This document shows, piece after piece, positions 25,385 through 64,000 of a stretch of DNA of 64,000 bases. The notes beneath the pieces are model-generated. The model worked only from the letters and a program-made list of their open reading frames with translations, searched no databases and was not told the origin of the DNA. The position numbers were made by a program, and so were the translations under genes. The stretch is from NCBI RefSeq assembly GCF_037042905.1, contig NC_087246.1:35650001-35714000 (forward strand), read 5' to 3'. Position 1 is the first letter of the stretch. Every line of letters begins with the position of its first letter. The stretch comes from Lytechinus pictus. Taxonomy: Eukaryota.

Positions 25385-25416
<32 letters not shown>

Positions 25417-34515: not shown

Positions 34516-34601
34516 TTATACTCCACCGCCCGGTGGGCCTGGAGGTGTGTTTGGTCTAGGTGTGTTTGACGGTCCAGAAGGTGGCAGGGCTTGACGTATT
34601 C
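34516..34601 (-). CDS. Unassigned secreted 6-Cys protein, paralog A, last exon (Pro-rich tail)
   Basis: acccag|GA; in phase 1 reads RIRQALPPSGPSNTPRPNTPPGPPGGGV-TAA; homologous to the last exons of B, C and D. Confidence 0.8.
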
Positions 34602-36498
34602 CTGGGTACAGATATTAACAAAAGGTAAAACATATTCAAACTTTACGAGGTTTGTTGCTGATATTTTGGTTGTTTGATTTCTGCAGGAAGGCCCACAAAA
34701 GTGGACTACATTTTTGTACAAAGCAATATTACGTGTGAAATAAAAATCGGAATCATCAATGTCATCACACCAGTAAAATTATTTAGTTTTTCTTCTTAAT
34801 TTCTACTCCCTGTGCCGTAATAAATGATAATATAGAAAATAGTGATTAGATTGAAATACCGGCATTTATAATTCCTTATTCGCGAGGTGATATCAACAAT
34901 GATGATAATAAAATAAACAATACTTTATAAATAGATCACAAAGTTATTAAAATGTGTACTTTAGAAAGAATAAGATGATTTGTATAAAGGATGTTTTTGA
35001 AAATAGAAATCAAACTACCAAAAGGAATTCGAGATTTCTGCCACAATTTCTAAACACCTATATGTTCTTGAAACTTGCAGAAACCTAGAAATTACCTTTC
35101 TAAATTGTAAAAAATAAATAAATAACAGGCCCTAACAAACTTAAGGGGAAAATGTTAGTTAATTCATAAAAGATGGAGTTAGAATTATTTATGATGACGT
35201 TGTACTTCCAAATGCGCTGGCAGTGTCTGCACGCTGCCCTTATCGACAATTTTGGAGTAATTATTTTGAAGAAAGCATGTATTATACAATAAGATCAGGC
35301 CGAAATATGAATATGCATTTTTTTTTGGGGGGGGTTAACCTTTTCCCCATTTAACCTAAGATTTATGTAGTTATCTCCCCATTCAGTTGATTCTTGCTTG
35401 TTTTCTGTTACTGTGTTTAACCTAGACAGCAAATGGTGTTTGTCAGGTGTCCTTGGAATAACTCATCACGATTAACTTTCATGTAGCTCTGTTTTTCTCC
35501 AATTAACTGTCGTTCAGGTACACACTCAGACACACACACATCCAAACACACCCTCAGACACCCACACACATACTGACAATACATGAAATATATAGATGGG
35601 GTTGGTGTGCGTGAGGGTGTGTATGTTTGTGCGTGTCAGTGCTCGTGCGTGTACGCACTTATCGAAAACGAGGACACACACCAAACCGAGGACGCCCCGG
35701 TACAGGACTATTGAGTGAATAACAGTTAATGAGTGATATTTTGATAGCCATGGTTTAGTATAAACTTGGATCAACTTAGACCACACTTTTATGGAATGCC
35801 AGTTGTCAACTGATACATCAATCCAAATTATTCTTATCCTGCTGGAAAGAATTGTCAAAAAATAATTGACACTTAAAAGGGGAAGAATAGGAAAATACAA
35901 ACATATTATGAATTTCGATGAATTACTTGATACAGTATAATTGCCATGAATGTGGAAGAAATATTATGAAGCCCAGCATTCCATAGAAGTGTTATTCATA
36001 ATTTTAGTTTAGACTAGGGTTAAACCTAGATTTTATTATTAGAACAGCATTCACTAAGCCCTCGATTCGCAACCATCTACAATGTCCTCGGTTGGATAGG
36101 AAATGGCCAAGATTTCTGGCATAGACATGTATGGTTTGCAATCATATCCGAATTTAACTTACCGACGATAAATGGTCAAGGATAACTATAATTTTCTTTG
36201 GCTTCATCACACAAACCTCTATTTATTTTTTTCAGATTATCTTATCATATAATGATTTTCAAAATGTTAATTGCTATATTATGACAACCCAATGTTTTAA
36301 ATAAGTTTTGAGAACGCGAGAAAATAAACTGGAATGAAATCACTAGGGGTGTAACCCCTTACACTAATATGGCTACAATGCTTCCTATGCCAAAAATTAC
36401 GGTACCTATCACACATAAACTGTATGGGATATGTTATGCAATTTTTGCTGTTTGGTTGTAACACCTAAAAAAAGAGGAAATGCAGTTATGGCACTTAC

Positions 36499-36780
36499 GT
36501 TCGCAAAGGTCAACAGTTCGTCCAAGATTGCATATATGCTCAAAAGCGGCGCATGGGTCACGTAATTGGATGACGTCGGTGCCGCTTGAGGAGCACAATC
36601 TCATGTCCCTCGCCATCCTGAACAGTGTTAGCATGTATCGATCACGGCTCCAGTCCCTATCCTTCTCATAGACTTCCTTTAGGACTTTCCAGTTGCAGAA
36701 ACCATATCCCTCATCTATCTTCTCGTAGTTATAATAGGGGCAAATCCGCTTTAGACGGCCCATGGGATTGTACATCGGCC
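36499..36780 (-). CDS. Paralog A, six-cysteine domain exon
   Basis: tttcag|GG ... C|gtaagt, 282 nt, phase 1/1; GPMYNPMGRLKRICPYYNYEKIDEGYGFCNWKVLKEVYEKDRDW...LC...DPCAAFEHICNLGRTVDLCE. Confidence 0.85.
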
Positions 36781-37477
36781 CTGAAAGTTTACAATAAGAA
36801 ATTATGAACATCAGTTGCAACGAGTAATTCTAGAATCAAACGGTTTAAAAATACAATGTCCATAATCTCCCTATCGTAAAAGTTAATGAAAATGTAAAAA
36901 AGAATAACTAATGGTCCATAAAGACGAGGCTAATTTGAATTGACCGCGTTTAGGGGATATGGATTGCCTTATTCTGATCTCGAATGATTAAAATGAGACC
37001 CTGCCAGAGGATTTCCTGTTAACATTGGACAAAAACTGAGCAAGATGATCGACAATTGCCTCTTTCTCTCTTAATTTCTTTTATATATTTTTCTCTTCTC
37101 CCTGTTCATTTTCGTTTTCTTTCTCTCTCCTTTTAAATACCCTTCCCTTTCTTTCCATTCCCCCTTTCCCTTCTCCTTTTTTTTATTGTGGCGGGGGAGG
37201 GGGGAGGCCCTTCGACCCCAATTTACCTTCACCTGTGTCTTATCACAGTCTTATAAACTTGACATCTGTTTAATACAAAACTTACTTATCTGTATCAATG
37301 CGGTTTCCCGTTGCAATTGTCAAAATAAGATTGTTATGCGTTATCTTATTTCATTTTGGTGATTCGGAACAATAACGCATTGTTCGGAGCATCTGTCACG
37401 AATGCGTGATCACATGAAATTATATAATGTATAGGTGTGAGTCAAGAGGGGTGTTGATGGGGACAGGATAGACTTGC

Positions 37478-37586
37478 CTGGACCATAACCGCCGTATCTA
37501 CCTCCGTATCCTCCGTATATGCCATAAAATCCGTATACTTGCGAAAAGCTGATCACAATAAAGAGACACGAGGTCAAAGTCTTCAT
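37478..37586 (-). CDS. Paralog A, signal peptide plus Gly/Tyr-rich exon (ATG in this exon); protein 158 aa
   Basis: tatcag|AAC ATG; MKTLTSCLFIVISFSQVYGFYGIYGGYGGRYGGYGP; donor G|gcaagt (GC-AG intron), phase 1. Confidence 0.8.
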
Positions 37587-38412
37587 GTTCTGATATAGGA
37601 AAAAGAGAAATAGTTTACCTGTATAAATTCGTTTTACAGCTCAATATTCATCTTATTTCTATTTTTCGGAAACAAGCCCAAATTATTATTTAATGTAATT
37701 ATTTGCTCAATGGGATTTACTTATAGTTTACATTTTAAAGAAACATATAAATCTCAAATATGGCAAATGTTTTGACAATTGGCATATCTAATAACATTCA
37801 GGTAAGATCTTGCTTGCATATAGCAGTGATAAATCTGTTCTGTTTTTTTTTTGTTAAAGAGAATAGAAACGTTGTTGAGAGGGTTATGTTAAAATAGTGA
37901 AATATAAGACTGACACGTAATTGATATAATAGTAACATAACTTCCTTGTATTATGGCTATTCTCCATTACAGCCACATAAATTTGAGTATAACCAATTAT
38001 TTTACCCTACCCTATTACTGCAAAGTATAGGTGTTGGTGAACACACGATTCGGCAGGCATGCTATAAAGGACTTTTCAACCCTGTTCTTTAGTATAGAGT
38101 TCTCCCTCCACGACACAAAACGGAGAACGTAGACAAATGTACTGTCGAATGCCCTTCATGCAATGAACAACCAAGAAGTCTTTGTCGAATATTGGTGAAT
38201 CAAAAGAGTAGTTTCGTCCCACACTCTGGATAATCGACATGTCTTGCATTTTTTTGTCAACTCCGAAACTTACTACGAAACTGTTTTTCCGGATTATTAA
38301 CTTTCAACAAAGACTTATCGGCTGTCCTTTGTCATTTGGTATTTTTAATAATTCTCTGTGTTCTTATATCCGTCGTGCGTAGCGATTCGAAACTGCCTAG
38401 TATGATCTTACA

Positions 38413-38703
38413 CCGGGAGAGCGTTTTAGGAAAGGACTTTGTTTTCCAACAGGTCCCATTTTATCCGATCGTTAACATAGTAATATTGCTTCTCAGCCAA
38501 TCAAAATCTAGGAAAGTTATCACATCAGGGGCCCGTTTCATAAAGAGTAACAACTGTTGTAACTTTGCCATTATGGCAACTACCATGGCAACCTTGATTT
38601 TGATTGGCTGCTGAGCCCTGTTACCATGGTAATTGCCATAATTGCAAAGTTACAACAGTTGGAAGTCCTTTATGAAACAGGCTCCAGACAAGGCTCCCCT
38701 AGT
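38413..38703. mobile_element. Nested MITEs of the GGG.CCGTTTCATAAA-terminus family (other members 40416-40543, 41471-41622, 46707-46883, 50614-50795)
   Basis: Inner element GGGGCCCGTTTCATAAAG ... CTTTATGAAACAGGCTCC (~38527-38687) sits inside an outer GGGAGAGCGTTTT ... GGCTCCCC element. Similar termini at the other listed copies. Confidence 0.65.
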
Positions 38704-39035
38704 TGGAAAGTGGCAAATATAACTGAACGTCTCGACTAAGAACGTTGGTGAAAGGCTGTGATTCGAGTGGTTCAAATAAGAATCCTCATTACTCAAAGCC
38801 TAAAGGGCAAGTATAGCCCTACAAAACTGTTTTTTTTTTTTTTTTATAAACAGAGGAAAGTCAAACAAGTATAATGCTGAAAATTCATCTTAAACGAGAG
38901 ATAATATACTATTTGAAATAACGTTATAGTTTTGGCCGGTCTAGAGTCAGTTTCTGGATGTGTCTGCGGCATTATGCTTGTGCACTGTAAAAGGCCAATA
39001 AAGCAAAGGAAAGGCTTGTAAACCACCAGACTTAC

Positions 39036-39175
39036 CGCTGCAGTGACTGTACCAAGATGTAGATTCGCTACGAATTCAATTATTAAAAATAGCTTTCCAG
39101 TTCAAAACCTTAAGACGTTAATTCAACTATTACCCAGAGTCGAATGGTGATCCCCACCGATCAATGGCATTTATA
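39036..39175 (-). promoter_or_regulatory. Paralog A core promoter and non-coding first exon
   Basis: GGTATAAAT (TATA at 39175) with TCACCATT about 30 nt downstream. Exon ends GTC ACT GCA GCG|gtaagt, in the position of the coding micro-exon of B, C and D. Confidence 0.6.
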
Positions 39176-40799
39176 CCAGTATACCATTCCACAAGGTGCG
39201 AAATATTATCCATTGGGCCTGTATTTGAGAAAGCCTCTCCACTTACTACTACGCCTGCTAGCCGTGCTTGATCTGAACATTTCGGCTAACATTACTCCTA
39301 ATATCTAACCCACGCCAGACTTCATGAACTATTGACCGTTAAAGAAACGAAAACAAAAATGACATAAAATGCGATCCATATATCGTAATGGGGGATATAT
39401 TTCTTTGTAAATCGGATTTTTATTAGAAAAATAGAAGGGATATCATTTAAGAAGACATATAGGAGTACACGGGGAGTACATTGACAGAATGACCAAAGAA
39501 CATCGGACCACGACTTTAACCACTTTCTGTTGCTGTAAGTTCGTGATTCCTTTCGACCAGGGACATCTGACGTTTATCTTTATGGACATACGACATGATG
39601 GTGATATTGAATCATCTTTAACATATGGTCACACAAGAATATAGATTTAAACCTAAGTTTGAAGAAAAAATTGTACATTTCATGAATTATTGCACATATA
39701 GCTTTAATCAATTTAAACTATATAAAGCTTTGTATGGACATATTGGACAATAAGCTATACTATGATGTTGCTATCTAATCATGTTCTTATAAAAATGGTC
39801 GCACAATGATATAAATTAAAGTTTAAAGCATGTCTTTTGTTTTGATAAATTCACCCCAAAAGTGCAAGTCATTATTCCAATTCGTTCCTAGAATATAATA
39901 ATACATGTTTCTAAAACTTCCCAACGATGCAATGAAAATATCTTTGCAGCACCAACCCCGCGAATGTCGGGAAGAGTGAGTGCCACCGTGTCTGAAAACA
40001 TTGCGAGGTTCCCAGACAAGGTGGTCAGCATTTTTTTGGACTCCCAAATAGCAACCACTACACAGACGCTTTCTAGAACGTAGAACATCTCTTGAAAATA
40101 GCCCTTCGTGACAAAGAAGTCTTTGTCGAAAATCGGTGAATCAAACAGCAGTGTCATTCGTGACTATAGTCTCTGGACAAACGACATATTTTACGACAAT
40201 CAGCTGTCCCGATTTACCAATTTTTGACAAAGTAGTATTAGCAGATCATCGTAATTTGACGGGCATTTTAAATATATTTACTATGTTGCAGAATCCTTCC
40301 CCGTTTTAATTGCGAAAACCCGCATGACGTCACAGCGACCGTAGTTTATCTGAGACGTAGCAGATACGAATCCTTTGGCGAGATATGGACTTAAAGTATG
40401 TCAAACAGCCTTTCTGGGGAGCGTTTCATTAAAAAGTTATCAGGTCTGACAACTTTCCTTGATTGTGATTGGCCGAGAGGCAGTGTTACCATAGTAACTG
40501 TCGGATAAAACAGTACTTGTCCTTTCATAAAACGCTCCCCTGGTCTCCAAGTGGACTCCGCAACGTATCAGAGATGTATCTGAGACTTTGCAAGGACATT
40601 GCAGATTCGCTAAGACATCTCAGCAATCAGGGATGTAAATAGTCTCCGCGATGTCTATGCGTAAATAATGGAGACGTCTCGGAGCCCAGATTCCTCTTAA
40701 GGGTCTGTCTCACCAAAGGAGACGTCTCTACAACATCCCAGAGACAATCGCTGACATGTTTCAAACGTAAAAAAAAAATCTTCTTTCTAAACAAGGAAA

Positions 40800-40907
40800 A
40801 CCATAACCGCCGTATCTACCTCCGTATCCTCCGTATATGCCATAAAATCCATATACTTGCGAAAAGCTGATCACAATAAAAAGACACGAGGTCAAAGTCT
40901 TCATATT
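40800..40907 (-). pseudogene. Orphan duplicate of paralog A signal/Gly-Tyr exon (homology with upstream intron extends to ~41065)
   Basis: cttcag|AAT ATG; MKTLTSCLFIVISFSQVYGFYGIYGGYGGRYGGYG is identical at protein level to A. The GCAAGT donor is missing and no dedicated downstream exons were found. Confidence 0.75.
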
Positions 40908-41815
40908 CTGAAGAAGAAAAAAGAAGAAGAATAGTTTACTTAAATTCGTTCTACAGCGCAATAATCATCTTATTTTTGTCTATTTTTCGGAAACAGGCCC
41001 AAATGATTATTTGGTATAACTATTTGCTAAATGGGATTTATTTGCAATTTACACTTATATATTTACACGTCGCTAGAGACAAGGTGGTAAGTAATTTGCA
41101 CTGCAGTCGCGGGGACGATGCTGCAAATTCTCCGAGTAGTCGCTATGCCTCATCGGAGTTTTTTCGTAGTTAAAGCTAAGTCCCAAAAATGTTTTTGAGA
41201 CATCACAGCGACTACTTGGAGACTTTGTAGCGATATCCCCGTTTCCGTCGGGCAAATCGCTTGTCAGCTTGTTTCGAGACGTCTCCGAGATGTCGAAGAG
41301 ACATGCATGCCTTTGTTTTGAACGACAAAACCATTTTTAAAGTTGGAGACTGAAGTACCTGAGATGTCGCAGAGGTGATCGTCGCGCGTGATCCTTTCCG
41401 GCAAAGCGTCATCGAATAGAGTACTGATGATGGTCACTGCTCGTGATGTCACTTAATCTTTGGAGAGGATCAGGGGACCGTTTCATGAAAGTTGTAAGCA
41501 CTGACAAGTTGTCTTTCTCCGACAGTTACCATAGTAACAGTCAGAGCCAGTGCCTTTCAGCCAATCAAAACCAAGGATTTCACTTAAATTGTCAGCACTG
41601 ACAACTTTCATGAAACACCCACTAGATTGTACAGCATCATCGAATAATACTGGAGCCTTACACTCACAAAGGCCGGGAACGACCAACACATCATCTTTTT
41701 TTTAATCATCCAACGCTTGATTATTTCCATTAACTCGAAGTGACTTGGAGAGAGTGTAATACTTTGGTATCGAGGTATCCTTGAGATTTAATGTGCTAAT
41801 TAAGATAATTATAGC

Positions 41816-41939
41816 CATGGGCGGAAATCTCTCCTTAAAGGTAGGGGGGACACAATTGAGTTTTCCGTGTTTATGTTCTACAGAATTACTAACTCAAACA
41901 CACACACATACATATGTATATATATATATATAACCAAAG

Positions 41940-41978
<39 letters not shown>

Positions 41979-44009
41979 TTATAGCCATTTTTCGAAGAGG
42001 GTATATTCCTAACTAAAGACGAAAGGCCTCAATAAATAATGCGAGCGCGAAGCGCGAGCCCAAATATGTTGATATTTCATAAATTGTGACCTGGAAATTG
42101 AACATTCTGAATATTTGTTGTGATCATGAACTAAATTCGAACCTACCTAAACCATTAATGCGAGCGCGAAGCGCGAGCTGAAAGTTGTTGGTTTTCCAAC
42201 CTAAAAACTAGACATTCGTAACACTTTTTCAAATCATAAACAGGATAGGAATCTAATAAAATAATGCTAGATCGAAGCGCTAGCTGAAGGTTTTCGATTT
42301 TCCAACCCATAAACTGGACATTCGTAACATGTTTTCAAATCATGAACAGGATAGGAATTTAACTAAATAATAGATGCGAGCGCGAACTGAAAATTGTTGA
42401 TTTTCCAACCTAAATACTGGACATTCATAGCACTTTAAAAAGAATATGAACAGAATATGAATCTAAACAATTAATGTGAGCGCGAAGCGGGAGCTGGAAG
42501 TTTTTGGATTTTCCAACCTAAATACTAAACATTCTTAGTACTTAAAAAAAAGTATGAACAGGATAGGAATCTAAACAATTAATGCGAGCACGAAGTAAGA
42601 GGTGAAAGTTTGTATTCTCCAACCTAATAACTGGACAATCGTCACACTTTTTCATATCATGAACATGATAAGAATTGTACTAAACAATATTAGATTCGAG
42701 CCCGAAGTGTGTGCTGAAGATATGTCATTTCCGGCCTACAAATTTGTATTATTAGCATATTTTAAAATCAATGACAGGGTAGCTATCTAACACAATTTTA
42801 ATTTGTGTGAGCGCGAAGCGTATCCTGTTTTTTTTTCCGACCAAAAAAAGTCATCTTCTTTTCACCTTATAGCAATAAACGGGATAGTATCTGACTTAAC
42901 CATATTACTGATGCGAGCGTGAAGCAAAAAATGATTTTTTTTATATTCAGATCTGAAAACTGGATCTTTCAAGCAATTTTGAAATAAAGAACAAGCAGTT
43001 TATCTCAATAAGCAATGCGAGCGCAAAGCGCGAGCTAATTTTTTTTTAGATTTTAACCTACAAATTATGAAAAAGATGGATATCTTCCTAAATAAATGAT
43101 TTGATTTTATATATTTCGATCTAAAAAGTGAAAAAAAATTACCACGTTTTGAAATAAAGAGATGGCTGTGTATTGATGCAAAGCGCGAGCAAATTCTTTA
43201 TTTTTATACTATGACCTGAAAGTTTTCTTTTTTTCCACTTATTCCCCTCCCCTTCCATCATTTAATTTTCTTCCTCGTCCTATCTTCTTATTTTTTCTCC
43301 TCACCTTCCTATTTTGCACCGCCAATAGGGGGCGGACCGCCGCTTCGCCCCCTTGATCTACCTATGATGACCCTCCCGCGGCAGGAATTTTGTGTAAAAA
43401 TGGAATATAAAAGTCTCGTTAATAGAGTATTCAAAAACAAATTTTGGGGGATTAGACATAGTTAAAATTCACTGCGAAGGATTATTCATAACTGATGAAA
43501 ACTATTCTTTTTACTGAGTACGCGAACAATGAAAATATTATTATATTCCAAGTAAATTTGGAATAAAGGGAAAATGAATTGGTTAAACAAAGATATGTTT
43601 TTACGGGTTATGGAACATTATCGTCTACCATCTATGCACTAAATTTACTTATAAGCGTCCAGAGGCGATTTTCTTTTTTCGTCATTTTTATTAGTTATGA
43701 AATTGACAATGGCCATCGATGTCATCAATGTCATCACTCTTTGGCTGGCATATAGGGCTAGATGCGAGTACGAGAATAGTCGGGCCGGTATGCCTTTTGT
43801 TTTCCTATCCAAGTTCTTGACAAAAACTATCTGTTTACATATATTTCGAAATTCGAGGATACATGTGTATAATTTCGATTTTGAATTATATATTTTTTTC
43901 CATAATAAAAGACCACAAATAGTAGGGGGGACATTTGATATTATGTCCCCCCCTTTCCAAAATGGTAGGGGGACGCGTCCCCCCTGTCCCCCTGGGATTT
44001 CCGCCCATG
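41816..44009. mobile_element. Non-autonomous hAT-type element (~2.2 kb) with internal ~100-120-bp tandem array
   Basis: Perfect 14-bp TIR CATGGGCGGAAATC / GATTTCCGCCCATG and perfect 8-bp TSD ATTATAGC (41808-41815, 44010-44017). Units with GCGAGCGCGAAGCGCGAGC repeat from ~42040 to ~43200. Confidence 0.85.
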
Positions 44010-46128: not shown

Positions 46129-46187
46129 CAACAATATAATATGATATAATATAATATAATACAATATCATTTCTTCTCCCCACTACG

Positions 46188-46218
<31 letters not shown>

Positions 46219-48598: not shown

Positions 48599-48895
48599 TT
48601 GAACAATAATCAACTGTTCGACCACTGCAAGCAGCATCGAAGCCCTGGCAAGGATCATGGATTGGAATTATTTGGTTCGCCTCTAGGTGACCGCCGACGA
48701 AGCACAACAGGCCGCTTCGAGATATCCCGTAGAGTTCCCGAAATGCATGTCGATCGTGGCGGCTGAAATCTTTCACCTTGTCGAATACCTCTTTCAGGAC
48801 CTTCCAATAGCACCTGCCATGCCCTTCATCCCACCTCTCTTTTTGATATATATAACAGTACTGACTGAAGCGGGCGCCTGGGTTGTGTCCTCCTC
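48599..48895 (-). CDS. Paralog B, six-cysteine domain exon
   Basis: tttcag|GA ... A|gtgagt, 297 nt, phase 1/1; GGGHNPGARFSQYCYIYQKERWDEGHGRCYWKVLKEVFDKVKDF...LC...DPCQGFDAACSGRTVDYCS. Confidence 0.85.
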
Positions 48896-50306: not shown

Positions 50307-50409
50307 CTCCAAACCCTCCATACATGCCATAGCCTCTGTGTCCGCCAAACCCCTGAGAAACACAGCAACCTATCATAACAGACAAGGAGACTCCAAGGAG
50401 AAGTCCTTT
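50307..50409 (-). CDS. Paralog B, signal peptide plus Gly/Tyr-rich exon
   Basis: tcacag|AAA ... G|gtaact; KGLLLGVSLSVMIGCCVSQGFGGHRGYGMYGGFG, phase 0/1. Confidence 0.8.
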
Positions 50410-51143: not shown

Positions 51144-51155
51144 CATTGTAGTCAT
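51144..51155 (-). CDS. Paralog B, 4-codon first coding exon (MTTM); protein 168 aa
   Basis: AAAATG ACT ACA ATG|gtaagt, phase 0, downstream of a TATA/Inr pair. Confidence 0.7.
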
Positions 51156-51219: not shown

Positions 51220-51254
51220 AAGTGACATTCGCCCACATCGTATTAGTATTTATA
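51220..51254 (-). promoter_or_regulatory. Paralog B core promoter (TATA plus Inr)
   Basis: TATAAATA starts at 51254; the A of TCACTT is at 51223, 31 nt downstream. Confidence 0.65.
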
Positions 51255-53422: not shown

Positions 53423-53458
53423 TATAAGTAGAGTGAATAAGTGAGGGGTCACCACATT
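53423..53458 (+). promoter_or_regulatory. Paralog C core promoter (TATA-like plus Inr-like)
   Basis: GGTATAAGTA...GTGAGGGGTCACCACATT aligns with the paralog A promoter GGTATAAAT...GTGGGGATCACCATT. Confidence 0.55.
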
Positions 53459-53542
53459 GTTGTCGCGGTACAAGTGTACCAATCCTCTGGAGCTTTTATA
53501 ACAATACTTGCAGGATATCAGTCGATTCGAAGCAGCAACAGA

Positions 53543-53554
53543 ATGACAGCATCG
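53543..53554 (+). CDS. Paralog C, 4-codon first coding exon (MTAS); protein 160 aa
   Basis: AGAATG ACA GCA TCG|gtaagt, phase 0. Confidence 0.7.
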
Positions 53555-54877
53555 GTAAGTATTTTTTTTTCCACTCGATTGGTATTGTGTGTGTCTCATG
53601 ACTTCTCAATTGTTTAAACTCATGGCCGTACGCATCGAGGTGAGGGTAAGGACAGGGGGCAAAGGGACAGTTGCCCCCCCCCCCCCAGAGAAAATGGAAA
53701 CGTACATATACATGTACATGTATTACTGAAAATTTTCATAAAATTTAACAAATGTGTGTACGAAATCCTTCTTTTTTTTCTCAGAAAATGCAGAAGCGCC
53801 CCCATGACATGCTCGGTCGCATCGCTCCCTCTATTTAGAGCTTCTTCAAAAACTGTATGTGCCCCCCCCCCCCGATAAAAATGCGTATGGTCATGCTACA
53901 GTTTCATTAAACGATAAATCGTTTTATTTCATGTTTTCTTTAATGCATCATGATGTGATGAATTCGCTTTAACAGATTTGAACCACAATACGACACTATT
54001 TTACTATTGTATCTTTTTTTAATAAAAAGGTTTAAAACTTTGATTTCTAAAAAAATCTATTTTCCCTTGTTATTTCTGATTACTACTTTATTTATGTCTT
54101 TGCAGTGTAACCCTTGTTTCAATTATAAGTTTTTTTTAATTAAGTTTTTTCCTATTCAGTACAGTTGAATGATAATTCTAAAGAAAAAAAAAGTGCTAAT
54201 TAAGGCCATACTAATTTTGTCTTCTGAATTTCATTCACCAAGAGCAAACGCAAGAATGTATAACAGACGACCTAAGCAAAGGAAACGAGAGCTTCGGTGT
54301 TTGTTCGTTTTAATTTACATTTTGTTTATTACTGCGTTTGCTTTTCGAAAATTAATTATCTTGTAAACAAATAGCTGGAAACAATGAAAATACTGAATGG
54401 ATTTCATGTGTGGCAGTAACAAACTAATATATATATTTATTCCAAATAAAATATATTTTTGATAATAAAAAAAAAATAGATATGCATTTGATATAAAGTT
54501 TATAAATAGATTATGTAATATGTTTCTGTGCCTTATTATTCCCTATATACCATGGAGAGTGGTAAAGCAGGATGTACTAGTATTCATCAACTATTTGTTA
54601 GAAAAGACTTTTAAGAAGCATTTGTCACAAAAATAAGGGAAAACAAATTCAGGTGATCTTTTAGATCACACGTAAACACCCGATCTTAATGGGATGATTT
54701 ACAAATTTACAGTGGTCATTTTGGCTTGGATTATTTTATTGTTCTGTTTAAATCTTGTATCACCAATTTAGAATTTCTCTCATTTTGTAATACTGCAATT
54801 TAAACAATATTGAACTTTTATTTTTGTACTTTCAGTAAAGTATACTGGAAGCAATATAGCAGAGCCCGCCATCTGAT

Positions 54878-55130
54878 TAAATAAAAAAAATTAAAACATA
54901 GTAATTTATACAATAACAGAAGAGGATTAATACGAAATAATGACAAGCCAAAAGAAATACGCTGTACGGACTGTTGTCAGAAGTACTATTATGTTGAATG
55001 ATAAATAAATAAAAAAATTAAAACATAGTAATTTATACAATAACAGAAGAGGATTAATACGAAATAATGACAAGCCAAAAGAAATACGCTGTACGGACTG
55101 TTGTCAGAAGTACTATTATGTTGAATGATA
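54878..55130. repeat. Near-perfect 127-bp tandem duplication in paralog C intron 1
   Basis: TTAAAACATAGTAATTTATACAATAACAGAAGAGG...ATGTTGAATGATA occurs twice with period 127. Confidence 0.9.
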
Positions 55131-55164
55131 TAATATTATTACTACTCGTATGGTATCATTTCAG

Positions 55165-55261
55165 AAGCTATCGCTCCTTGCTCTCTGTCTATCTCTTTTG
55201 GTTTCTGCATCTGTTTCACAAAATTGGGACACATTTGGTGAATATGGATTCGGTGGATTTG
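55165..55261 (+). CDS. Paralog C, signal peptide plus Gly/aromatic-rich exon
   Basis: tttcag|AAG ... G|gtgagt; KLSLLALCLSLLVSASVSQNWDTFGEYGFGGF, phase 0/1. Confidence 0.82.
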
Positions 55262-56020
55262 GTGAGTACATCATTACATGATATTGACTGAACTTGAGGG
55301 ATATACCACTTATATTTCCCAAAATATTATCATGATCGCCCGAGTCGTGACGAGGGCAATGTGTGTAATGTAAGTGAGGGGATCATTTATGGTTTCTCCA
55401 GTAAATTAATGCAAGGAAGTGTTATCTATTCTTCATTACCTATAGTTCCATTTCAGAATACAGTCTTTGTCTGTAGTTTTGTCATATCCAATAAATATTT
55501 TTAGGAGAGTTGTTTATGCAATTAGGTGCTTAGAGGAATATACTTGCATTAGTCTGGGATTGTATTTTCGAAACAGTTATTGAGACAGTCAGTGTTACAT
55601 TCTCGAACCATTTCAGTAAAAGTGCCAATGTATAAATGTATAAGTACCAACAACTCTGTATTTTTCTAGGCTGATGATTTGGTGTATTTACTTATAACAT
55701 GTTTTCGTCATTGTTTTTAATCCTTCAAATCAATATTGTGTCTTCCGATAAGATAAAGGCAACGCCATGTTTCCTCCTTCTCCTCCACATAACCTTCATT
55801 GATCATTGCAAGAAAACATTGGACTGCCAACTGTAAAAAAATAAAATATTATACTCCACATACTGAGAGTATGCCTTAGCTGCATGCCTGGTTGCCCCCA
55901 CCCCCTTCCCCCTCAAAAATGGGGAAAACATAATAATGAATTGCCAATCAAAATGATCAAAGTGGGTTTGTGTTTTGCTTCGTATTAAACGCCGCACATC
56001 GGATTATTACCATTTCAATC

Positions 56021-56062
<42 letters not shown>

Positions 56063-56146
56063 GGGGGGGGGGGGTTCGTTATATATAATTATATTGTTTA
56101 CGGATGATTGAATGTATGTTTTTAATGCTTCTCTCTAATTTTTTAG

Positions 56147-56431
56147 GACCAGAACTAGCCCCCGGTGCTCGCATGGCTAATTACTGTAATCTGTTTAACA
56201 AGGAGAAGCATGACCAAGGAAAGGGATGCAATGGGCAGGTCTTAAAGAAAGTTTATGATAAAGACAAGGATATTAACCAAAATGAATCTATGTTAAGGAT
56301 CTTCAGACTGGCGAGGAGAGGGGCATTTTGTTACAAGGAAGGAGCTCATATTGTGACTATAAGATCACCCTGTCATGCAATGGAAATTTCTTGTCGTCCA
56401 TATTCCCGTAGTTTGGTCGATAACTGTTGGA
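56147..56431 (+). CDS. Paralog C, six-cysteine domain exon
   Basis: ttttag|GA ... A|gtgagt, 285 nt, phase 1/1; GPELAPGARMANYCNLFNKEKHDQGKGCNGQVLKKVYDKDKDI...ARRGAFCY...SPCHAMEISCR...VDNCW. Confidence 0.85.
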
Positions 56432-57606
56432 GTGAGTACATTTTTATGTTTTTTGTTTTATTTCTGCACTCTTAACAATGTTGGGCAATACTGTCCACAC
56501 GACAATCGGTTAAAACTTTATCAAATTCTGGGTGGTCTGAAACCAATTACGTGTGCTTTGGATGAACACTGCACAGCATCGGTCGAAAGCTACCCAGAGG
56601 TGGATACATTTTTTAAACAAATTGTTACGTAGATAGTATGTTGCCCAACATTTTAAGAGTGAAATGGGTTTCCGCATAATCGAGATTATTTGATGGGTGC
56701 TGTGTGTGATAGTCATTTTGCGATTTGGAAATCGTTTTTCTTTCTCTTTCTTTCCCCACGACGTACACCGCGTAATATCCGTTAGATACACACACAACGA
56801 GTTGTGTCCTTATCTTATGACAGTTTTTACGCATTATCAGTAGGTTAGAAACTCCGATTTTTATCCGGGGCCTGTGAGGGAACAGAATAGGATACCCGTA
56901 TAGCATATCCAATCATTTTTCATAAACATTTACCACGTTTACTGACAATCGGAAGGGAACCGTCTGGGAACGGTCCGATGCCCGCTCGTTGGCCGTACGA
57001 TGTCCTTTCCAGCACCGATATGGCTTTCTTCGTCCTAACGAATATTAATCTGACCCCGAATGTATAGTGTCAAATTGCCTGCCTGAAATATATTTTGTGT
57101 GAGATGTAGATATCACATGTGATTTCTAATTATTTCTATTTATCAAAGTAAAATAGAGGGAAATGATTCATTGCCACACAGCGTGTCTAATTACAATGAC
57201 TAATGTGGTGAAAAGGCATGACATGTACATATATGACGTATAGTTTTGTTGCCTTATGATAGCAATTTATTTAATACTTTGCAACCCCCCCCCCCCCCCA
57301 AGAACAAAACAAAAAAAATGAGAAAAACGATGTAATTTTATACTCTTCATATGCATTACCTTTCGTAAGGGAAGGTGCAAATTTACACGCTTTGAAGCGA
57401 ATGCATGCACCATAAAAGGTGCAAAGCTGCACTATTATTTATCACTATTTTCGTTTAATTCCGGGTTTCTATTTAAGGTAAAATATTAAACCTCTTTGTA
57501 CGATTAAGACACAGCCACAGCTGTTATCAAATCTAATATGCGTGTGCTATAATATACAAGGCATGACTCTAAACATTTTTCTGTCTTTGTTATTTTTCCG
57601 TAACAG

Positions 57607-57695
57607 AAGTGACTCGTCCACCAACTCGTCGACCAGACACTCCTGGCCCTAATCCACCTCAGGCCCCCGAAACCCCACGTGGACGAGGCATCTAA
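57607..57695 (+). CDS. Paralog C, last exon (Pro-rich tail)
   Basis: taacag|AA; KVTRPPTRRPDTPGPNPPQAPETPRGRGI-TAA. Confidence 0.82.
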
Positions 57696-59493
57696 CCATC
57701 CATCGGAAAAGGAGCGTTGGACACAAAGACTCGGTTTGATGATAGAGAGTGGCGACAGAGTTCGATGTGGCTTTCAAGTAACATCGAATTCCTGTCATGG
57801 CTTACTTTACTACTCAGCTGAACATTATTACAAGAATCGGGAGGACAATTTGTGTTCAGCAAATACTAGCAGAGCTTCGAAGTTCATCGGTAATGCTCCA
57901 GTCCGATCGACCAACAAAACTCTCACAAATTAGGCTCCAAGCCGACCGATAGCATGCCATTTGAAATAAGGTGGTAGATTTGATTGGCATTGAGTCGGTC
58001 TCGTTGGTGTGACTGAAACAGATCTGAGGCGGTTCTGTATCTTTACCATGGCGGCCCATATGCAAGGTGATCCAGGGATCGAATCAAGATTACCACCTGG
58101 GTATTTTGGATGCACTTTTACCGTCGAGAGGGATGTTTGGAAAGGAATGCTACCGTCCCGATGACTCAAGAACGCCGTTTATACCACTCGCCTTTCTCTA
58201 GTTAGCATTTTTACTCCCCCTTGTTGAAGTAATATAGTTTTGGCTCAGATAGGCTATGATTAACATATAGGTTTCATGCTGAGTTTAAAGCCGGTCAGAC
58301 AGTAGGCTACGTTTAGATGTTGTTGTAAAGAAAGAAACCTTTTACAGTATTTGTTTTTAATGTGAATATTTTGAAGAAAAAAATAAAAGTAACAATCATA
58401 TAATACTGGTCATGTGACATTAATTATATAAGTTATATTCTTCTTAGTCGTAAAGATATACTTTTCTTTTTGACTTCGAGTTCATAATCTCACGAGATCC
58501 TGCATTAGCTTAGACCTAACAGGCATCTATCAACTTTATTCGAGAAGAAATGATAGAATGGGCGATGGAGCGATTTTAGACAACGAACAAATGAAAAAGG
58601 AAAGAATAAAGAGGAAAAATTATAATGTGATACAGATTAAGAGAGAAAGAAAACAAGAGAGAGAGAGAGAGAAGGAAAGAGAGAACATCTTAGAAGGGAT
58701 GGAGAACATAGTTTCTTAATAAAACTGCTGCGTCTTTCAGCAAACTTTGGCGTTTCACATCTGATTTCCCACATTCTCATCATTTTGTCTATTCTTGGAA
58801 AGAAGGGAGGAAAAATACTCTGTGGAAGATTACAGCCAAAAATACGTGGCAGAAACTTTTGATGAAATTGCTTACGGATGGAGGAAGCAGAAAAAAAAAT
58901 GCAAGAACACTCGGCGCTTCGGGCAGGTTGACTCATGAAGACGGACAGTCAACCTGTCCGAAACGTCGAGTCAATCTAGGACTTACCACATGGGGCACGG
59001 CAAACCCGTTCCACAAGTAACCAGGATGTACATACAACTACTTTGTGAAATTGAGCAAAACTTTGGAATATTATACCTTTCTTATTTTGATGAAAATTTT
59101 CACTTCATATGCGTGTTTAATTTTTCGCTTTTTATCAGAATCAGCTTTTTTTTAAATGGGGTGGACGGGACCTTACACATTTATATTTTGTGATTAAAAA
59201 AAAAAACATGTAAGCAAAATAAAACGGTCCACCAAATTGTACCAATTTGGCTTTTCCGTTTATCCCCTGTGACAAAAGGGCACATGATAAAATGTTCAAC
59301 GGCATAGATGCCGTGGCCGGGTATCGAACCGCAAGCTTTATTGTATCATGCACTTGAGGCCACTCTGCTAAGGCACCTCATGATAAGTTACACGGAAAAA
59401 AATCAAGACAAATACATACGATGACTCACACTTCACACACATTTACTAGTATGTAATTTGATGATCGGGGACTCACCATTAATCTACAAAGTG

Positions 59494-59658
59494 CACTGTA
59501 AAAATGAAGTGCTAATTTAGCACTTACGGAGCTTGTATAGTGACTGCACTACGAGTGTTGATTTTCTAGTTCAAATTCAAACTAGAAAATCAGCACTCGT
59601 AGTGCAGTCACTATACAAGCACTGTAAGTGCTAAATTAGCACTTTATTTTTTACAGTA
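59494..59658. mobile_element. Near-perfect palindromic MITE with CACTGTAAAAA terminus
   Basis: Arms AAGTGCTAATTTAGCACTTAC..GCTTGTATAGTGACTGCACTACGAGTG.TGATTTTCTAGTT and their reverse complement surround a very short spacer. Confidence 0.75.
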
Positions 59659-61722
59659 TGGGGACTTGTTGCATACACTAAAAAAAAAAAAAAAATCGAA
59701 TTTTATCCAAGAAACGGACTCAGTTCCAAAAGTAACGAGAGAATAGTTCGCTGACGCTCCCTACCCCAAATACACTCAACCTGAATTCAATTGGCACTAC
59801 GGGAACTTTTTACAAATCACATGTTTACTATGAAGCGGTTTATGAGGAGTTGATTGGTTTGGTAATCTGGATTGGGAACGTCTCCGGTTGTAAGTCCCCG
59901 GTAAAATGTAAGAATATCCTCAGAATTAGGTCATTACAAACTCACACACGCCACGCGCCCTCACACACATACACCCACCCACCCTCCCACACGCACGTAC
60001 ACACGAACCAAACCCTCACATATACACCCCCACCCATACACCAGTTTATCCACAAATTCCACGTTTCTTTTTGTGAGTCGATTATGTACTTATGGTATGT
60101 AATTTTAAAATGGAATAAGCATTAATTGCCGAATAACCCCAAACTATATTTCCTTGTCCTAGGAATGTAAAGAGGCAATATGTTAACAATATCAATTAAA
60201 AATGTTCTGAAAGGACATGAGAAGGAATTAAGCTCAATTCTTACATTATTTGCTTTAGCCAATGACGTATTTTGATGGACGAAAGATGGTTTTCTGTTAC
60301 TCTATTTTGTATCGCATGGCAAACCAATTCCTATCTAACTCGTGATAAAAATCAAGAGTATTACTCACAGACCTATTGTATAACTCTTTCTACCGTTTCC
60401 TCGATCCTTCTCCCTCAATTTTTTTCTATATATTTTCTCATGTTACAGCCGTGTTCCCCTCTGTACCATTTGTATTCACAATTTCCACTTCTTTACATTT
60501 TCAAATATCTTGTACTCACACAAACAAATCACAAAGTTCCCATCCGTTTTTAGATCTCTATTGCTGACAAGCAAATATACATTTACGTCCACATTTTATC
60601 ATCCATGCACGGACTTAGGTGTCTCGTGATGTACAGTATAAAAAAAAATTATTTTTTTTACAGAGTTACGCTGTAGAACAAATTACCTAATACTACATAC
60701 ATGTATATTTATTTTTCAACACACAGAAACAAATATTCAATAAATATGAACAATTCATCACGTGAACGGTATACTCGGCAATAATTATTATGTATATTTT
60801 TTTACATCATCATTTTATATAAGATCATGTCAATGCTTAACGCAATGTTATCACTACTTTAAAATACAATTCACTTATTGAATCTTTCCGTTTAAAAAAT
60901 ACCATATGCACAATGTAAAAGCAAAATATATATGGTCTCACTACTACTGAAGGTTTCCATGGTGAAGAAGAAGAGTGTAGTGGGTTTCACGGTACACCGT
61001 GTACCACTTGCCCACGAAAGATGCATGGTGTACCGTGAAACCCTCTACACTCATTATCTCACTGATTTGGGTATTTCTTCAGATCGCTGGGTGATGGTGC
61101 ATGAAACATATAATAGTAGAGGGTTTTCGCTTCCACGCTTCCATTCAACATGTTCAAGAACAACGTGAAAGTATTGAAAAAGCCCGTCAAATGACGATGA
61201 ACAGCTAGGGTCTTTGTCTAAAATTCTTGAATGGAACCGGAACAGCAATTGCATCGTAAGTTTCGGAGCTGCCAAAAAAAATGCAAGCATGTCATCTTTC
61301 CAGGTTCCAAGTTTCAACGAGCCTCGGCAAAGACTGCATTGTCATGAAGGGGATTTGACAATATATAGATTCTCTACTTTCCAGAAAGAGTCTGCTTAGC
61401 TGTTGCGAAAAATCCTTAACGAAAACCTGGTCAATCCATTGTCAGCTAAACGTCATACGGGATTTTTCGCAACAGCTAAGCAGACACTTTCTGGATAATA
61501 AACCGACCGATTCTCTTGCATAATGTCAAATGACATACCATCGATCGAGTTCCAATCGGATTTATTGGTGTGCCCGTAGCATAAATCATATCACATCATT
61601 GATGTGATTTCATTGAAGGAATCCAACCTCTGTAAAGTGAACTTTGGTGGCATGCCGGATGGCATGACAATCCAAATGACGACTGTAGAGAAGTTTTGGT
61701 AAACGAAATCGCTGTAAAATGT

Positions 61723-61823
61723 TTACATTCCCCAGCCATACCAGCCCGGCGGGCCTGGAACAGGAGGATTTGGTCGATTGGTCACTGCAGGACCGGCTGG
61801 TGGAGGATTCTGCTGAGCTGCCC
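61723..61823 (-). CDS. Paralog D, last exon (Pro-rich tail)
   Basis: ttttag|GG; RAAQQNPPPAGPAVTNRPNPPVPGPPGWYGWGM-TAA. Confidence 0.8.
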
Positions 61824-62099
61824 CTAAAATGAGATAGAAAATAGTAAGAGAATATTGTGAAGCTTAAGTTAGAACAGTCAAATCATAAAGGAGTCATGGT
61901 TATGCGTATAATCGAAAAAGGAGCACTCTTTGTCTAACCTTTTGTAAAATGTTGCCAATGCAAAAACTTCATCACAATTTGAAAATAGAAATCTACAGAA
62001 TAGTCCGTTGTCTCTCTTGCTAAGATTCAAGGTGTTAAGTGAGCCTAATAAAGCACTTGGATCAACTTAAGTGTTTGAAAGAAAATATCGTACTTATAC

Positions 62100-62396
62100 T
62101 CCAGCAGCTATCAATCCTTGGTGGACTCTGTTGGATAAAAGGGGGGCCGCGACAGGCAAGTTGCATAGCATCACAGGCTCCTCTTATATTCATCACTTGT
62201 GGTCCGTTGGCATAGCAGAGCACTCCCCGTCTTGCCCGTCTAAAGAGCTGCCTCATGAACCCATCGTGGTAGATATCCTTATCTTTGTCGTAGACTTCCT
62301 CGAGAACATCCCTGTTGCAGCGACCCTCGTCGAACATTTCCGAACCAAACAAGCCACAGTACTCGGACATTCGACCGTGTGGATTATAGCCTGGGC
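62100..62396 (-). CDS. Paralog D, six-cysteine domain exon
   Basis: atacag|GC ... A|gtataa, 297 nt, phase 1/1; GPGYNPHGRMSEYCGLFGSEMFDEGRCNRDVLEEVYDKDKDI...ARRGVLCY...GACDAMQLACR...IDSCW. Confidence 0.83.
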
Positions 62397-63475
62397 CTGT
62401 ATTTTTTTTTTTTTTGGGGGGGGGGAAAGAAATCAGTCATACTTCTCCTCGCTTTTGCAATATTGGCTGCAATCTGCCATTTATATACGCCATGGCATCA
62501 CTACAGGCATAGGAGGGAGCCCTTTAAAAGGGGACCTCGAGGGAGTTTATAATACTCATAACATTAACATAATAATAACATTCTTAATCTAACGTGACAA
62601 GACCATGATGGGTTTATAAAATATTTCTGCACCTATTCAATTCAGGTTCGACAACTATACTTCATAAAAAGAAATAACATCAAATTATTAAGAAAAACAG
62701 GAGATCAATATACATTCTAAAAATATAAAGAAATGACGGGAAATGTTCCATTATTTGGAGATGAAGCTTTAATCTATGAAAAAGTTAATCAATTTTATGG
62801 AAATTATGTAAATTATGCAAATACGCTATACAATGGCTTTAATTCGATGATAATAGGTCACTCATTGAATTAAAAAGCGAGGCAAACATATTGCGTTCAA
62901 TGATGTGTTTAAGTTGTTAAAATAGTCCGTTACTTCGTATGCAGTTTTTCATCTGGAAAAAAAATCGAAGTTTCACTTAGATGATTTAATAGTGCATTCT
63001 TAAATCGTATTGTACTGGCAATTATCAAATTCTCCTCGAACTTAAACGTTAGTTTTCCATTTGCGTTTGACAAGAAAACTCAATACACATGAAATTGTTG
63101 TTATTTTTTTGTATTAAAGGATGTTGATACCTTAAAGGCACAGTTTAACATTAATTTTAATTTGAAAGATTTGAGCTGCAGGGTTCCACTTGTGATATTT
63201 TATAAGAATGAACATGATGAAGACAAGTAAAACTAAAATCGCGCCCCAAAACCATTATTTAGTGCATCAAAACATATGACTATAAAGTGACAAGAAACGC
63301 CATATCATGCACCTCACATAATTATATGTGTTATATATCTCCTCTAGTAGATGATTTTTAAGCCACAGAAATCTTAAAATTGCCTGCAGGAATTTGATTT
63401 CTTTTAAAAGATGTGAACAGTATTAAGCACAACATGAATCAAAATAAATGAAGTAACACATTTTAGTATACTTGC

Positions 63476-63566
63476 CCCAATAGCCATCATACATGCCGTA
63501 CATTCCGTATACTTGAGAGAACGAGGTACATATTATCACAGATAAACAGAGAGATATTACTGTATT
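63476..63566 (-). CDS. Paralog D, signal peptide plus Gly/Tyr-rich exon
   Basis: tttcag|AAT ... G|gcaagt (GC donor); NTVISLCLSVIICTSFSQVYGMYGMYDGYW, phase 0/1. Confidence 0.8.
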
Positions 63567-63626
63567 CTGAAAATGGTAATAAAAACAAAAGTATATATGA
63601 ATGAATATATCTCCACTGACCATTGA

Positions 63627-63668
<42 letters not shown>

Positions 63669-63683
63669 ATATATACATGTATA

Positions 63684-63801
63684 TGCTCTGCTTGTTATCA
63701 TTTATGTATCGTGACATAAACATCCTAAACATTTTGAAGTTTAAACTTCAAAATGTTTAGGATGTTTATGTCACGATACATAAATGATAAAAAGCAGAGC
63801 A
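63684..63801. repeat. 118-bp spacerless palindrome in paralog D intron 1
   Basis: Centre GTTT|AAAC at 63742/63743; 63695-63790 is a perfect inverted repeat with one mismatched pair further out. Confidence 0.95.
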
Positions 63802-63991
63802 GAAAAACGCTGCTTCGGCTTCTATTGTGTAAACAAGAGATTAATCAATGGTTTTGCACTTGATCGAAACATTAAAATAAGAGTTTCCAACTCCTTTTCA
63901 AATTTTAAGACATACATAAGTATGTTTGTGGTTTCTATTGATAATAGGCAATAGAATGATACAACTAACAGTTTTGAATTATTGTACTCAC

Positions 63992-64000
63992 CGTTGCAAT
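63992..64000 (-). CDS. Paralog D, first coding micro-exon, truncated by the window edge ([M]IAT)
   Basis: ATT GCA ACG|gtgagt, phase 0; aligns with codons 2-4 of MTAS (C) and MTTM (B). Confidence 0.6.

Follow-up and report, generated by a model that had tools for sequence, protein, structure and literature searches.

Several groups of small secreted proteins offer points of comparison for a cysteine-rich domain set between low-complexity regions. The saposin-like proteins (SAPLIPs: saposins, NK-lysin and granulysin) are small helical domains with three disulfides, include both acidic and basic members, and follow the cysteine pattern C-x3-C ... C-x(~10)-C ... C-x5-C, which joins the N and C termini. 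The composite antimicrobial peptides of crustaceans (hyastatin, penaeidins and type II crustins) combine a signal peptide, Gly-rich and Pro/Arg-rich parts, a six-Cys domain and cationic charge. Sea urchins themselves possess spicule-matrix proteins (SM50, PM27, SM37 and SM30), which are secreted, basic in pI, encoded in tandem clusters and defined by a C-type lectin domain, with Pro/Gly-rich repeats that contain G-(W/M)-G and are of the PGMG type in PM27 and SM50. Finally, Gly/Tyr-rich arms are found beside the binding domains of arthropod cuticle proteins and also in mussel foot proteins, and in the sea-urchin fertilisation envelope peroxidases cross-link tyrosines.

An earlier note on a 64,000-nucleotide stretch of the Lytechinus pictus genome (C2:35,650,001-35,714,000, hereafter the window), made from the sequence alone, described a cluster of four paralogous genes, A to D, which share a 4-exon plan and encode small secreted proteins with a Gly/Tyr-rich stretch, a six-Cys domain and a Pro-rich tail. 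We find that A-D are intact paralogues under selective constraint, and that they belong to an orphan family restricted to sea urchins. We propose, with a probability of roughly 0.35, that they function extracellularly, as binding proteins associated with a matrix or a surface, and that their Gly/Tyr arm can be cross-linked; this reading is based on analogy.

Spliced models were built for all four genes, and their coordinates and intron phases (0,1,1) agree with those first described. When the exons of gene A were used in a tblastn search of the window, the Cys-domain exon recurred three times elsewhere (48905-48588, E 1.7e-22; 62406-62152 and 56146-56394, E 5.6e-19); matches to the tail and signal exons came up too. 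The models encode proteins of 158 (A), 168 (B), 160 (C) and 168 aa (D), with phases 0,1,1 in B, C and D, while the start codon of A sits within its signal exon. B, C and D are exactly the RefSeq proteins of LOC129272338 (XP_054765470.1), LOC129272329 and LOC129272318 (XP_054765446.2, with the corrected donor described below), each labelled 'uncharacterized protein'; there is no correct public model for gene A. The genes as first placed are thus upheld; the family was, as claimed, undescribed, but three of its four genes here were already annotated. Coordinates of the features are collected in Table 1.

Table 1. Features of the four-gene cluster (window positions).
Feature	Position	Strand	Basis or remark
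Gene A first coding exon: ATG, signal peptide ending ...FS (next residue Q), Gly/Tyr stretch; phase-1 donor GCAAGT	37478..37586	-	frame and donor kept in L. variegatus
Gene A exon for the six-Cys domain: phase 1 on entry and on exit, donor GTAAGT	36499..36780	-	97% identity to L. variegatus LOC121406910
Gene A tail exon: Pro-rich, C-terminal ...PPGPPGGGV, stop codon	34516..34601	-	spliced model
Candidate 5' non-coding exon of A: out-of-frame ATG, then GTAAGT donor	39247..39280	-	inferred only
Extra copy of A's signal/Gly-Tyr exon: acceptor and ORF intact, 100% aa identity, no donor	40800..40904	-	
Gene B exon 1: ATG + 3 codons (MTTM), donor GTAAGT, phase 0	51144..51155	-	model = XP_054765470.1
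TATA-like TATAAATA near gene B exon 1	51247-51254		
Gene B exon 2: remaining signal peptide, Gly/Tyr(Phe) stretch	50307..50409	-	spliced model
Gene B exon 3: six-Cys domain	48599..48895	-	spliced model, alignment
Gene B exon 4: Pro-rich tail with C-terminal ...PRGRGI, stop codon	47898..47992	-	tail identical in L. variegatus
Gene C exon 1: MTAS, donor GTAAGT, phase 0	53543..53554	+	model = LOC129272329
Gene C exon 2: signal peptide, Gly/Phe/Tyr stretch	55165..55261	+	spliced model
Gene C exon 3: six-Cys domain, the one folded (pLDDT 86.7)	56147..56431	+	
Gene C exon 4: Pro-rich tail with C-terminal ...PRGRGI, stop codon	57607..57695	+	spliced model
Gene D exon 1: MIAT	63992-64003 (in window 63992..64000)	-	junction 63992 to 63566 in RNA contig
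Gene D exon 2: signal peptide, Gly/Tyr stretch, GC donor GCAAGT	63476..63566	-	contig offsets fit junction 63476 to 62396
Gene D exon 3: six-Cys domain, donor GTACGA at 62093	62094..62396	-	RNA joint 61822/3 to 62093/4
Gene D exon 4: Pro-rich tail with C-terminal ...GWYGWGM (CDS 61723-61823), and at least 300 nt of 3'UTR	61416..61823	-	

Gene D is demonstrably transcribed and spliced: contigs from the public RNA run X3 span all three of its introns. Two details of gene structure are corrected: the exon-3 donor of D is placed by an RNA contig 6 nt 3' of the most obvious site, and the intron after the Gly/Tyr exon is GC-AG in both A and D, with direct RNA support for that of D. For gene A an alternative donor, GTCCAG, was considered and dropped, since it is lost in L. 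variegatus whereas GCAAGT is kept. The ATG of D lies at 64001-64003, 1-3 bases past the window end, with a 5'UTR that extends to at least 64078 and a TATA-like TATAAGAG near 64125-64132. Two further RNA runs, X1 (for B) and X2 (for B and D), shared 5-6% of words with the query stretches, and when placed on the gene D stretch, D only, gave no matching contigs. Run X3 contains D and is not listed for B. Direct RNA evidence covers gene D, and A, B and C are supported by sequence models, RefSeq (for B and C) and conservation; all four are real genes, as transcribed or strongly conserved family members.

Each protein is ordered as a signal peptide, a Gly/Tyr(Phe) stretch of 12-20 residues, a six-Cys domain of ~95 residues and a Pro-rich tail, with a mass of ~16 kDa once the signal peptide is removed and a pI of about 8-9.5. 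The N-terminal hydrophobic core (Kyte-Doolittle 2.4-3.0 over 11 residues, helical at residues 5-25 in the AlphaFold model of B) is followed by small residues and Q, and cleavage probably falls between S and Q, leaving Gln as the mature N-terminus. The domain occupies a single phase-1/phase-1 exon with a signal peptide upstream, the arrangement that defines family membership. Its six cysteines are invariant in an alignment of A-D with two further paralogues, are all present in every full-length domain exon of the L. pictus genome, and in A-D are spaced C-x13-16-C-x33-35-C-x13-17-C-x6-C-x7-15-C. AlphaFold folds the domain of C into helices and a beta-hairpin with confidence (pLDDT 86.7, pTM 0.77), and in full-length B assigns pLDDT values below 50 to the Gly/Tyr stretch, 86-95 to the domain and 79-90 to the tail. 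The Gly/Tyr(Phe) stretch is thus disordered in the prediction. Because AlphaFold places the tail with high confidence, with pLDDT as the sole measure, the models suggest that it docks on the domain; its conserved terminal motif is PPG(R/G)G-hydrophobic or GWGM.

The earlier note had seen no known domain and a lineage-restricted secreted family, and both statements held up. Pfam hmmscan (E up to 1-10) of the four domain exons and seven full-length members matched no family, including Kazal, Kunitz, EGF, ShK, WAP, C-type lectin, EF-hand and insect OBP (PBP_GOBP), with one sub-threshold match to WXXGXW at E 0.17; an NCBIfam scan gave no match, and the family profile had 0 matches among PDB sequences at E up to 10. 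In a profile search of 1.84 billion proteins, the named relatives were all from sea urchins (Lytechinus, Strongylocentrotus and Diadema), and no protein named strongylocin or centrocin was among the matches. Two ankyrin-repeat proteins in that search were judged spurious (hhalign against P0016:200-330 gave a probability of 4.6%, and the Ank Pfam domain is absent from the members scanned), as was one further long protein. At the level of predicted structure, nothing significant outside the family came from Foldseek (PDB, AFDB clusters, Swiss-Prot), from VIA-align wide with two models or from ESM Atlas searches that used fold or features; the sole matches were the family's own S. purpuratus models. 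The RefSeq entries that do belong to it (L. variegatus LOC121409559 and LOC121406910; S. purpuratus LOC105441533, LOC105441530, LOC105442045 and others; and Diadema setosum) are likewise uncharacterized, with none named or assigned to a domain family. A full-text literature search by 18 LOC identifiers and two RNA run accessions gave no paper and a keyword search nothing relevant; the main text of the L. variegatus spine transcriptome paper does not list family genes, and a venom review mentions nothing resembling them. Tryptic peptides of S. purpuratus members were sought in skeletal proteome supplements, where none of 6 (tooth and test/spine; PMC2614417, PMC2527298) and none of 12 (spicule; PMC2909932) was found; this absence is weak evidence because these studies searched an older gene set, Glean3 of 2006, from which the family may be missing.

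The cluster of four is correct as to its paralogues but understates the family: A-D lie at the left end of a tandem array of 13 copies that spans about 120 kb, and the genome holds at least 18 copies of the six-Cys domain. Paralogues are 41-50% identical, and A-D form one clade of basic proteins. In other members the domain is paired with different ends, as in acidic relatives with Thr-rich mucin-like tails (P0041, P0007) and relatives with a hydrophobic C-terminus (P0046, P0029). In P0052, which is orthologous to paralogue E and comes from L. variegatus, a PPGRxGWGM unit is repeated four times.

Comparison with L. variegatus confirms the selection that intact frames and Cys spacing had indicated. 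By synteny and tree the L. variegatus orthologues are collinear and one-to-one, and orthologues of A and C are present in S. purpuratus. Between the two Lytechinus species exons are 94.7-96.5% identical with zero indels, against 71-86% identity and many indels in introns, and dN/dS lies at 0.06-0.12 (A 0.064, B 0.084, C 0.101, D 0.124). The C-terminal motif PPG(R/G)G[IVMF] is kept from Lytechinus to Diadema. The L. variegatus gene A model (150 aa) translates the signal exon in a different frame and omits the Gly/Tyr part; since it bypasses the conserved GC donor, it is probably wrong. It begins its ORF at the place that matches the candidate 5' exon of L. pictus. The extra exon copy near gene A loses homology at the exon end and has no counterpart at the collinear L. 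variegatus place.

How might such proteins act? If A-D are binding proteins of a matrix or surface, the disulfide-locked domain with its docked tail would form the recognition unit, the flexible N-terminal Gly/Tyr arm would tie the protein to matrix through either tyrosine cross-links or aromatic/cation adhesion, and different paralogues would serve different tissues or stages. Flexible Gly/Tyr(/Arg)-rich segments serve matrix binding or cross-linking in arthropod cuticle proteins and the mussel foot protein mfp-3, which are analogues only, with no homology and a different central domain. A role in binding, rather than as an arms-race effector, is favoured by the low dN/dS, tails included (that of B being identical in L. 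variegatus), by the conserved orthologues and by the pairing of one domain with varied ends, the usual deployment of a binding module. Against a matrix or surface role count the shortness of the Gly/Tyr arm for a structural part and, weakly, the missing skeletal peptides. The matrix, adhesive or defence role first suggested remains one of analogy. Defence would take the form of humoral effectors, cationic and antimicrobial or membrane-active, in which the Gly/Tyr arm, a helical domain that is stabilised by disulfides and may be saposin-like, and a tail rich in Pro and Arg are assembled as in the crustacean composite peptides. The basic charge, Gly/Tyr stretch and PRP-containing tail would suit such proteins equally well, but selection on conserved orthologues points away from an arms race, and we consider defence effectors unlikely. 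Structural similarity to SAPLIPs is weak and below significance, recurrent, and spans nearly the whole saposin chain. No SapB_1 or SapB_2 match was found in the domain exons and full-length members scanned (hmmscan, E up to 1-10), and the A-D spacing does not fit the SAPLIP cysteine pattern. Compared with the crustacean peptides, the urchin Cys domain is 2-3x larger and helical, WAP or any other known domain is absent, and the parts stand in a different order.

Still less probable, in our view, are secreted signalling ligands, whose receptor would read the C-terminal motif or domain surface, or carriers of a hydrophobic ligand after the manner of the six-Cys helical odorant-binding proteins. 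Very strong purifying selection on small proteins, extending to the extreme C-terminus, the conserved N-terminal Gln, a compact helical domain in the models and the seemingly different expression of paralogues would all fit, but the proteins lack dibasic processing sites and amidation signals, 13 or more tandem copies with mucin-tailed and hydrophobic-tailed relatives would be unusual for hormones, and the fold searches matched neither odorant-binding proteins nor cytokines. It is very doubtful that these are occluded matrix proteins of the calcite skeleton, with a role like that of the basic SM50/PM27 group, even though sea-urchin restriction, basic proteins, a tandem array like the SM gene clusters and Pro/Gly tails with the repeated PPGRxGWGM unit speak for it. 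The family lacks the defining lectin domain (no Lectin_C in Pfam scans), has four exons where spicule-matrix genes have two, yielded none of the 6-12 peptides sought in the skeletal proteome supplements, and has transcripts in hardly any public run, though embryonic sea-urchin RNA-seq, in which spicule genes are abundant, is common. Beside these readings we tentatively entertain a wider one, that the six-Cys domain would be a new fold and superfamily arisen in or confined to sea urchins, and that the A-E clade would be a new extracellular class, its PPGRG-hydrophobic tail docked on the domain and its Gly/Tyr arm anchoring or inserting. Such proteins would help to build some tissue or secretion peculiar to echinoids, be it an adhesive, a ligament, a cuticle or a defence, which all proteomic and functional work has so far missed.

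These results amend the annotation, in that gene A has no correct model, its L. variegatus counterpart is probably mis-framed and two members have conserved GC-AG introns. The family may also be missing from the gene sets used in the published proteome studies of the sea-urchin skeleton. More broadly, a phylum that serves as a developmental and biomaterials model holds a family of about 18 genes that is well conserved and undescribed, and whose fold is predicted with confidence and has no detectable relative. Knock-outs are feasible in L. pictus, and the function of the family is therefore directly testable. Should the Gly/Tyr arm prove adhesive or cross-linking, or the domain membrane-active, the family would be of interest for biomaterials or innate-immunity research.

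Three kinds of repeated exon, encoding the signal peptide with its Gly/Tyr stretch, the Cys domain and the Pro-rich C-terminus, were found by a six-frame scan and a tblastn search of the window with the exons of gene A, the Cys-domain exon (between-paralogue E-values 1.7e-22 to 5.6e-19) and the Pro-rich terminal exon each being present four times. Spliced models for the four paralogues, built by reading the DNA that flanks each tblastn match, give proteins of 158 (A), 168 (B), 160 (C) and 168 (D) amino acids, which are 41-50% identical to one another with the six cysteines invariant, and the model ends match to the base the gene coordinates of the earlier note. B, C and D begin with an exon of 12 nt (ATG plus three codons) followed by a phase-0 intron, the start codon of A lies within its signal exon, and the signal/Gly-Tyr and Cys-domain exons both end in phase 1. 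The ATG of D occupies window positions 64001-64003, immediately beyond the window end, and a TATA-like element is found about 125 nt upstream at the 5' end of this gene. The protein models of B, C and D agree in every residue with RefSeq XP_054765470.1 (LOC129272338), LOC129272329 and XP_054765446.2 (LOC129272318), respectively, and the genes are mostly in RefSeq already; the new element lies in recognising the family, with its size and array structure, the strong constraint upon it, the orphan fold predicted for it, the GC-AG introns and what we consider a mis-annotation of A.

Features located in the window (unprefixed positions) and elsewhere in the L. pictus assembly (contigs C2, which holds the window, C3 and C19)
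Feature	Position	Strand	Basis
Cys-domain exon match	36790-36434	-	tblastn with gene A exons
Cys-domain exon match	48905-48588	-	tblastn with gene A exons
Cys-domain exon match	62406-62152	-	tblastn with gene A exons
Cys-domain exon match	56146-56394	+	tblastn with gene A exons
N run	17,086-17,441		masked sequence in window
Array copies beyond window	C2:35,717,740-35,807,017		domain profile
Non-array copy	C2:29,289,285		domain profile
Non-array copies	C19:3,568,464; C19:3,584,822; C19:13,044,798		domain profile
Non-array copy	C3:12,933,237		domain profile

RNA contigs were aligned to the gene D stretch only, D being chosen because 48% of the words of such a stretch occur in the public run X3, which dates from 2024. 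One X3 contig of 1200 nt covers the 3'UTR and exon 4 of D (61416-61822/3), omits 270 nt with GT..AG ends (minus strand), spans exon 3 (62093/4-62388) and enters exon 2 (63474-63562), with offsets that agree with the predicted junction 62396|63476, where the intron is of the GC-AG type and the contig placement has a 2-nt 'GC' ambiguity. Another contig crosses the junction 63566|63992 and extends to 64078 in the 5'UTR. All three introns of D, the predicted junctions of which the earlier note had left to be checked against spliced transcripts, are confirmed by these contigs. The RNA also places the exon-3 donor 6 nt past the most obvious site; the protein is thereby two residues longer and matches the current RefSeq entry exactly. 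X3 is not among the runs listed for the gene B stretch, and thus the paralogues probably differ in expression.

The L. variegatus locus, retrieved via its proteins, is collinear and carries D, C (on the opposite strand), B and A, followed by an MFS-type gene. Exon lengths and splice sites are identical in the two Lytechinus species for every exon, including the GCAAGT donor of A, and the exons are 94.7-96.5% identical with zero indels, whereas identity falls to 71-86% in the orthologous introns, whose alignments contain hundreds of gap columns. Together with dN/dS values of 0.064 (A), 0.084 (B), 0.101 (C) and 0.124 (D), this bears out the selection claimed for the four genes. Conservation extends to the low-complexity parts, and the Pro-rich tail of B is identical in both species.

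The L. variegatus RefSeq model of A (P0001, LOC121406910; 150 aa) begins further upstream, at an ATG corresponding to window position 39280, reads the signal exon in a different frame, uses a GT donor directly after the 'SQ' codons and thereby has neither signal peptide nor Gly/Tyr stretch. We regard this model as mis-built, since conservation extends to both the signal-peptide frame and the GC donor, and since the RNA contigs confirm the homologous GC-AG intron in D. The window sequence at 39247-39280 (-), which matches the upstream-ATG region of the L. variegatus locus (L013), is a candidate 5' exon of A and, if truly so, its ATG would be an out-of-frame upstream start. Further upstream, at 40800-40904 (-) with flank to 41056, lies a duplicate of the signal/Gly-Tyr exon of A that is specific to L. 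pictus, as it was not found in the collinear L. variegatus region; it is 100% identical in protein and 88% in DNA over about 255 bp, its acceptor is intact, homology stops exactly at the exon end, and a splice donor is absent.

Elsewhere in the window, an open frame at 501-935 (+) shows a Cys pattern that finishes in ...CCDGDLCN and matches Pfam UPAR_LY6_2 below threshold (E 0.0039; 17.8 bits, cut-off 31.5 bits); it probably represents an exon from a Ly6/uPAR-type gene. Hydrophobic open frames at about 18,700-26,100 (+) are collinear with an L. variegatus gene of 635 aa that has a faint MFS_1 match, and one of them, 24850-25722 (+), continues into His-rich and Ile-rich low-complexity sequence.

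In every precursor a hydrophobic core is followed by small residues and, in all clade members, by Q. Signal cleavage is likely at S|Q, and would give an N-terminal Gln, at which pyroglutamate may form. AlphaFold2, run on the domain of C with a 23-sequence alignment, gave a model (pLDDT 86.7, pTM 0.77) of two short and two longer helices, a beta-hairpin and one more helix at the end. In the full-length B model the signal peptide is helical, the Gly/Tyr stretch falls below pLDDT 50, the domain reaches 86-95 and, unexpectedly, the Pro-rich tail has values of 79-90 without secondary structure, which suggests that it may pack on the domain. Searches of Pfam, NCBIfam and PDB sequences returned zero known domains, the best Foldseek E-values outside the family were 0.9 (PDB) and 0.4 (AFDB), and Atlas TM-scores were 0.43 or lower; in the structure comparison that the earlier note had proposed, the predicted fold is thus without any known relative that can be demonstrated.

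When 1.84 billion representative proteins were searched with a HMMER profile, 24 matched, 21 of them family members; the other three, two proteins with ankyrin repeats and one further long protein, were rejected as spurious. The named members are all echinoid (Lytechinus pictus, L. variegatus, Strongylocentrotus purpuratus and Diadema setosum/antillarum), the other members deriving from Logan runs and one large ENA assembly, and none is named from starfish, sea cucumbers, crinoids or hemichordates, the RefSeq proteomes of which the search covered. This supports a family restricted, within the sensitivity of HMMER, to sea urchins, and with the empty domain searches it upholds the earlier view of a lineage-restricted secreted family lacking a known domain. 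The named relatives are annotated as 'uncharacterized protein', apart from P0052, an L. variegatus protein orthologous to array member E (C2:35,747,6xx), which was auto-named 'collagen alpha-1(IX) chain-like' solely owing to a tail of four PPGRxGWGM units, a motif that in single-unit form terminates most proteins of the A-E clade.

A domain profile search found 18 copies in the L. pictus genome, 14 more than the window holds; further copies past its end, as sought earlier, are among them. Thirteen of the 18 lie within C2:35,686,500-35,807,017, with A-D the first four, and the others are on C2 (one), C19 (three) and C3 (one); exon phases are identical in the two outside copies inspected. An in-frame TAG is all that distinguishes the copy at C2:35,717,740 from that at 35,721,545. 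The copies at C2:35,767,675 and 35,777,339 differ at a single residue, a sign of recent duplication of this pair. In a maximum-likelihood tree A-D group with two more array members, orthologues from L. variegatus and relatives from S. purpuratus in a single clade (support 100/100), and the other clades comprise acidic or neutral proteins. P0046 and P0029, older S. purpuratus models of C19-type members, have a hydrophobic C-terminal segment, suggesting that membrane-anchored or GPI-anchored forms of the domain may exist.

What these proteins do can be weighed only tentatively, and none of 18 LOC identifiers of family genes is mentioned in the full texts searched. Occlusion in the skeletal matrix appears quite improbable; tryptic peptides of S. 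purpuratus members are absent from the tooth, test/spine and spicule proteome supplements (PMC2614417, PMC2527298, PMC2909932), a negative that is weak because the spectra had been matched to Glean3, an older gene set, and the LOC numbers of the family genes suggest later annotation. A putative ligand or carrier is unlikely, and other functions share the remainder. A defence effector is doubtful yet tenable, and would be consistent with the basic charge, PRP-type motifs in the tail, the tandem expansion of the genes, a weak saposin resemblance and a Gly/Tyr arm like that of the nematode Gly/Tyr antimicrobial peptides.

We favour, at a probability of roughly one in three, a putative stable extracellular protein that binds matrix or surfaces. 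Counted towards this are the very low dN/dS, tails included, the one-to-one orthologues, the recurrence of the domain in other clades, where it is combined with mucin-like or hydrophobic C-termini, and the flexible Tyr-rich arm, which might undergo cross-linking.
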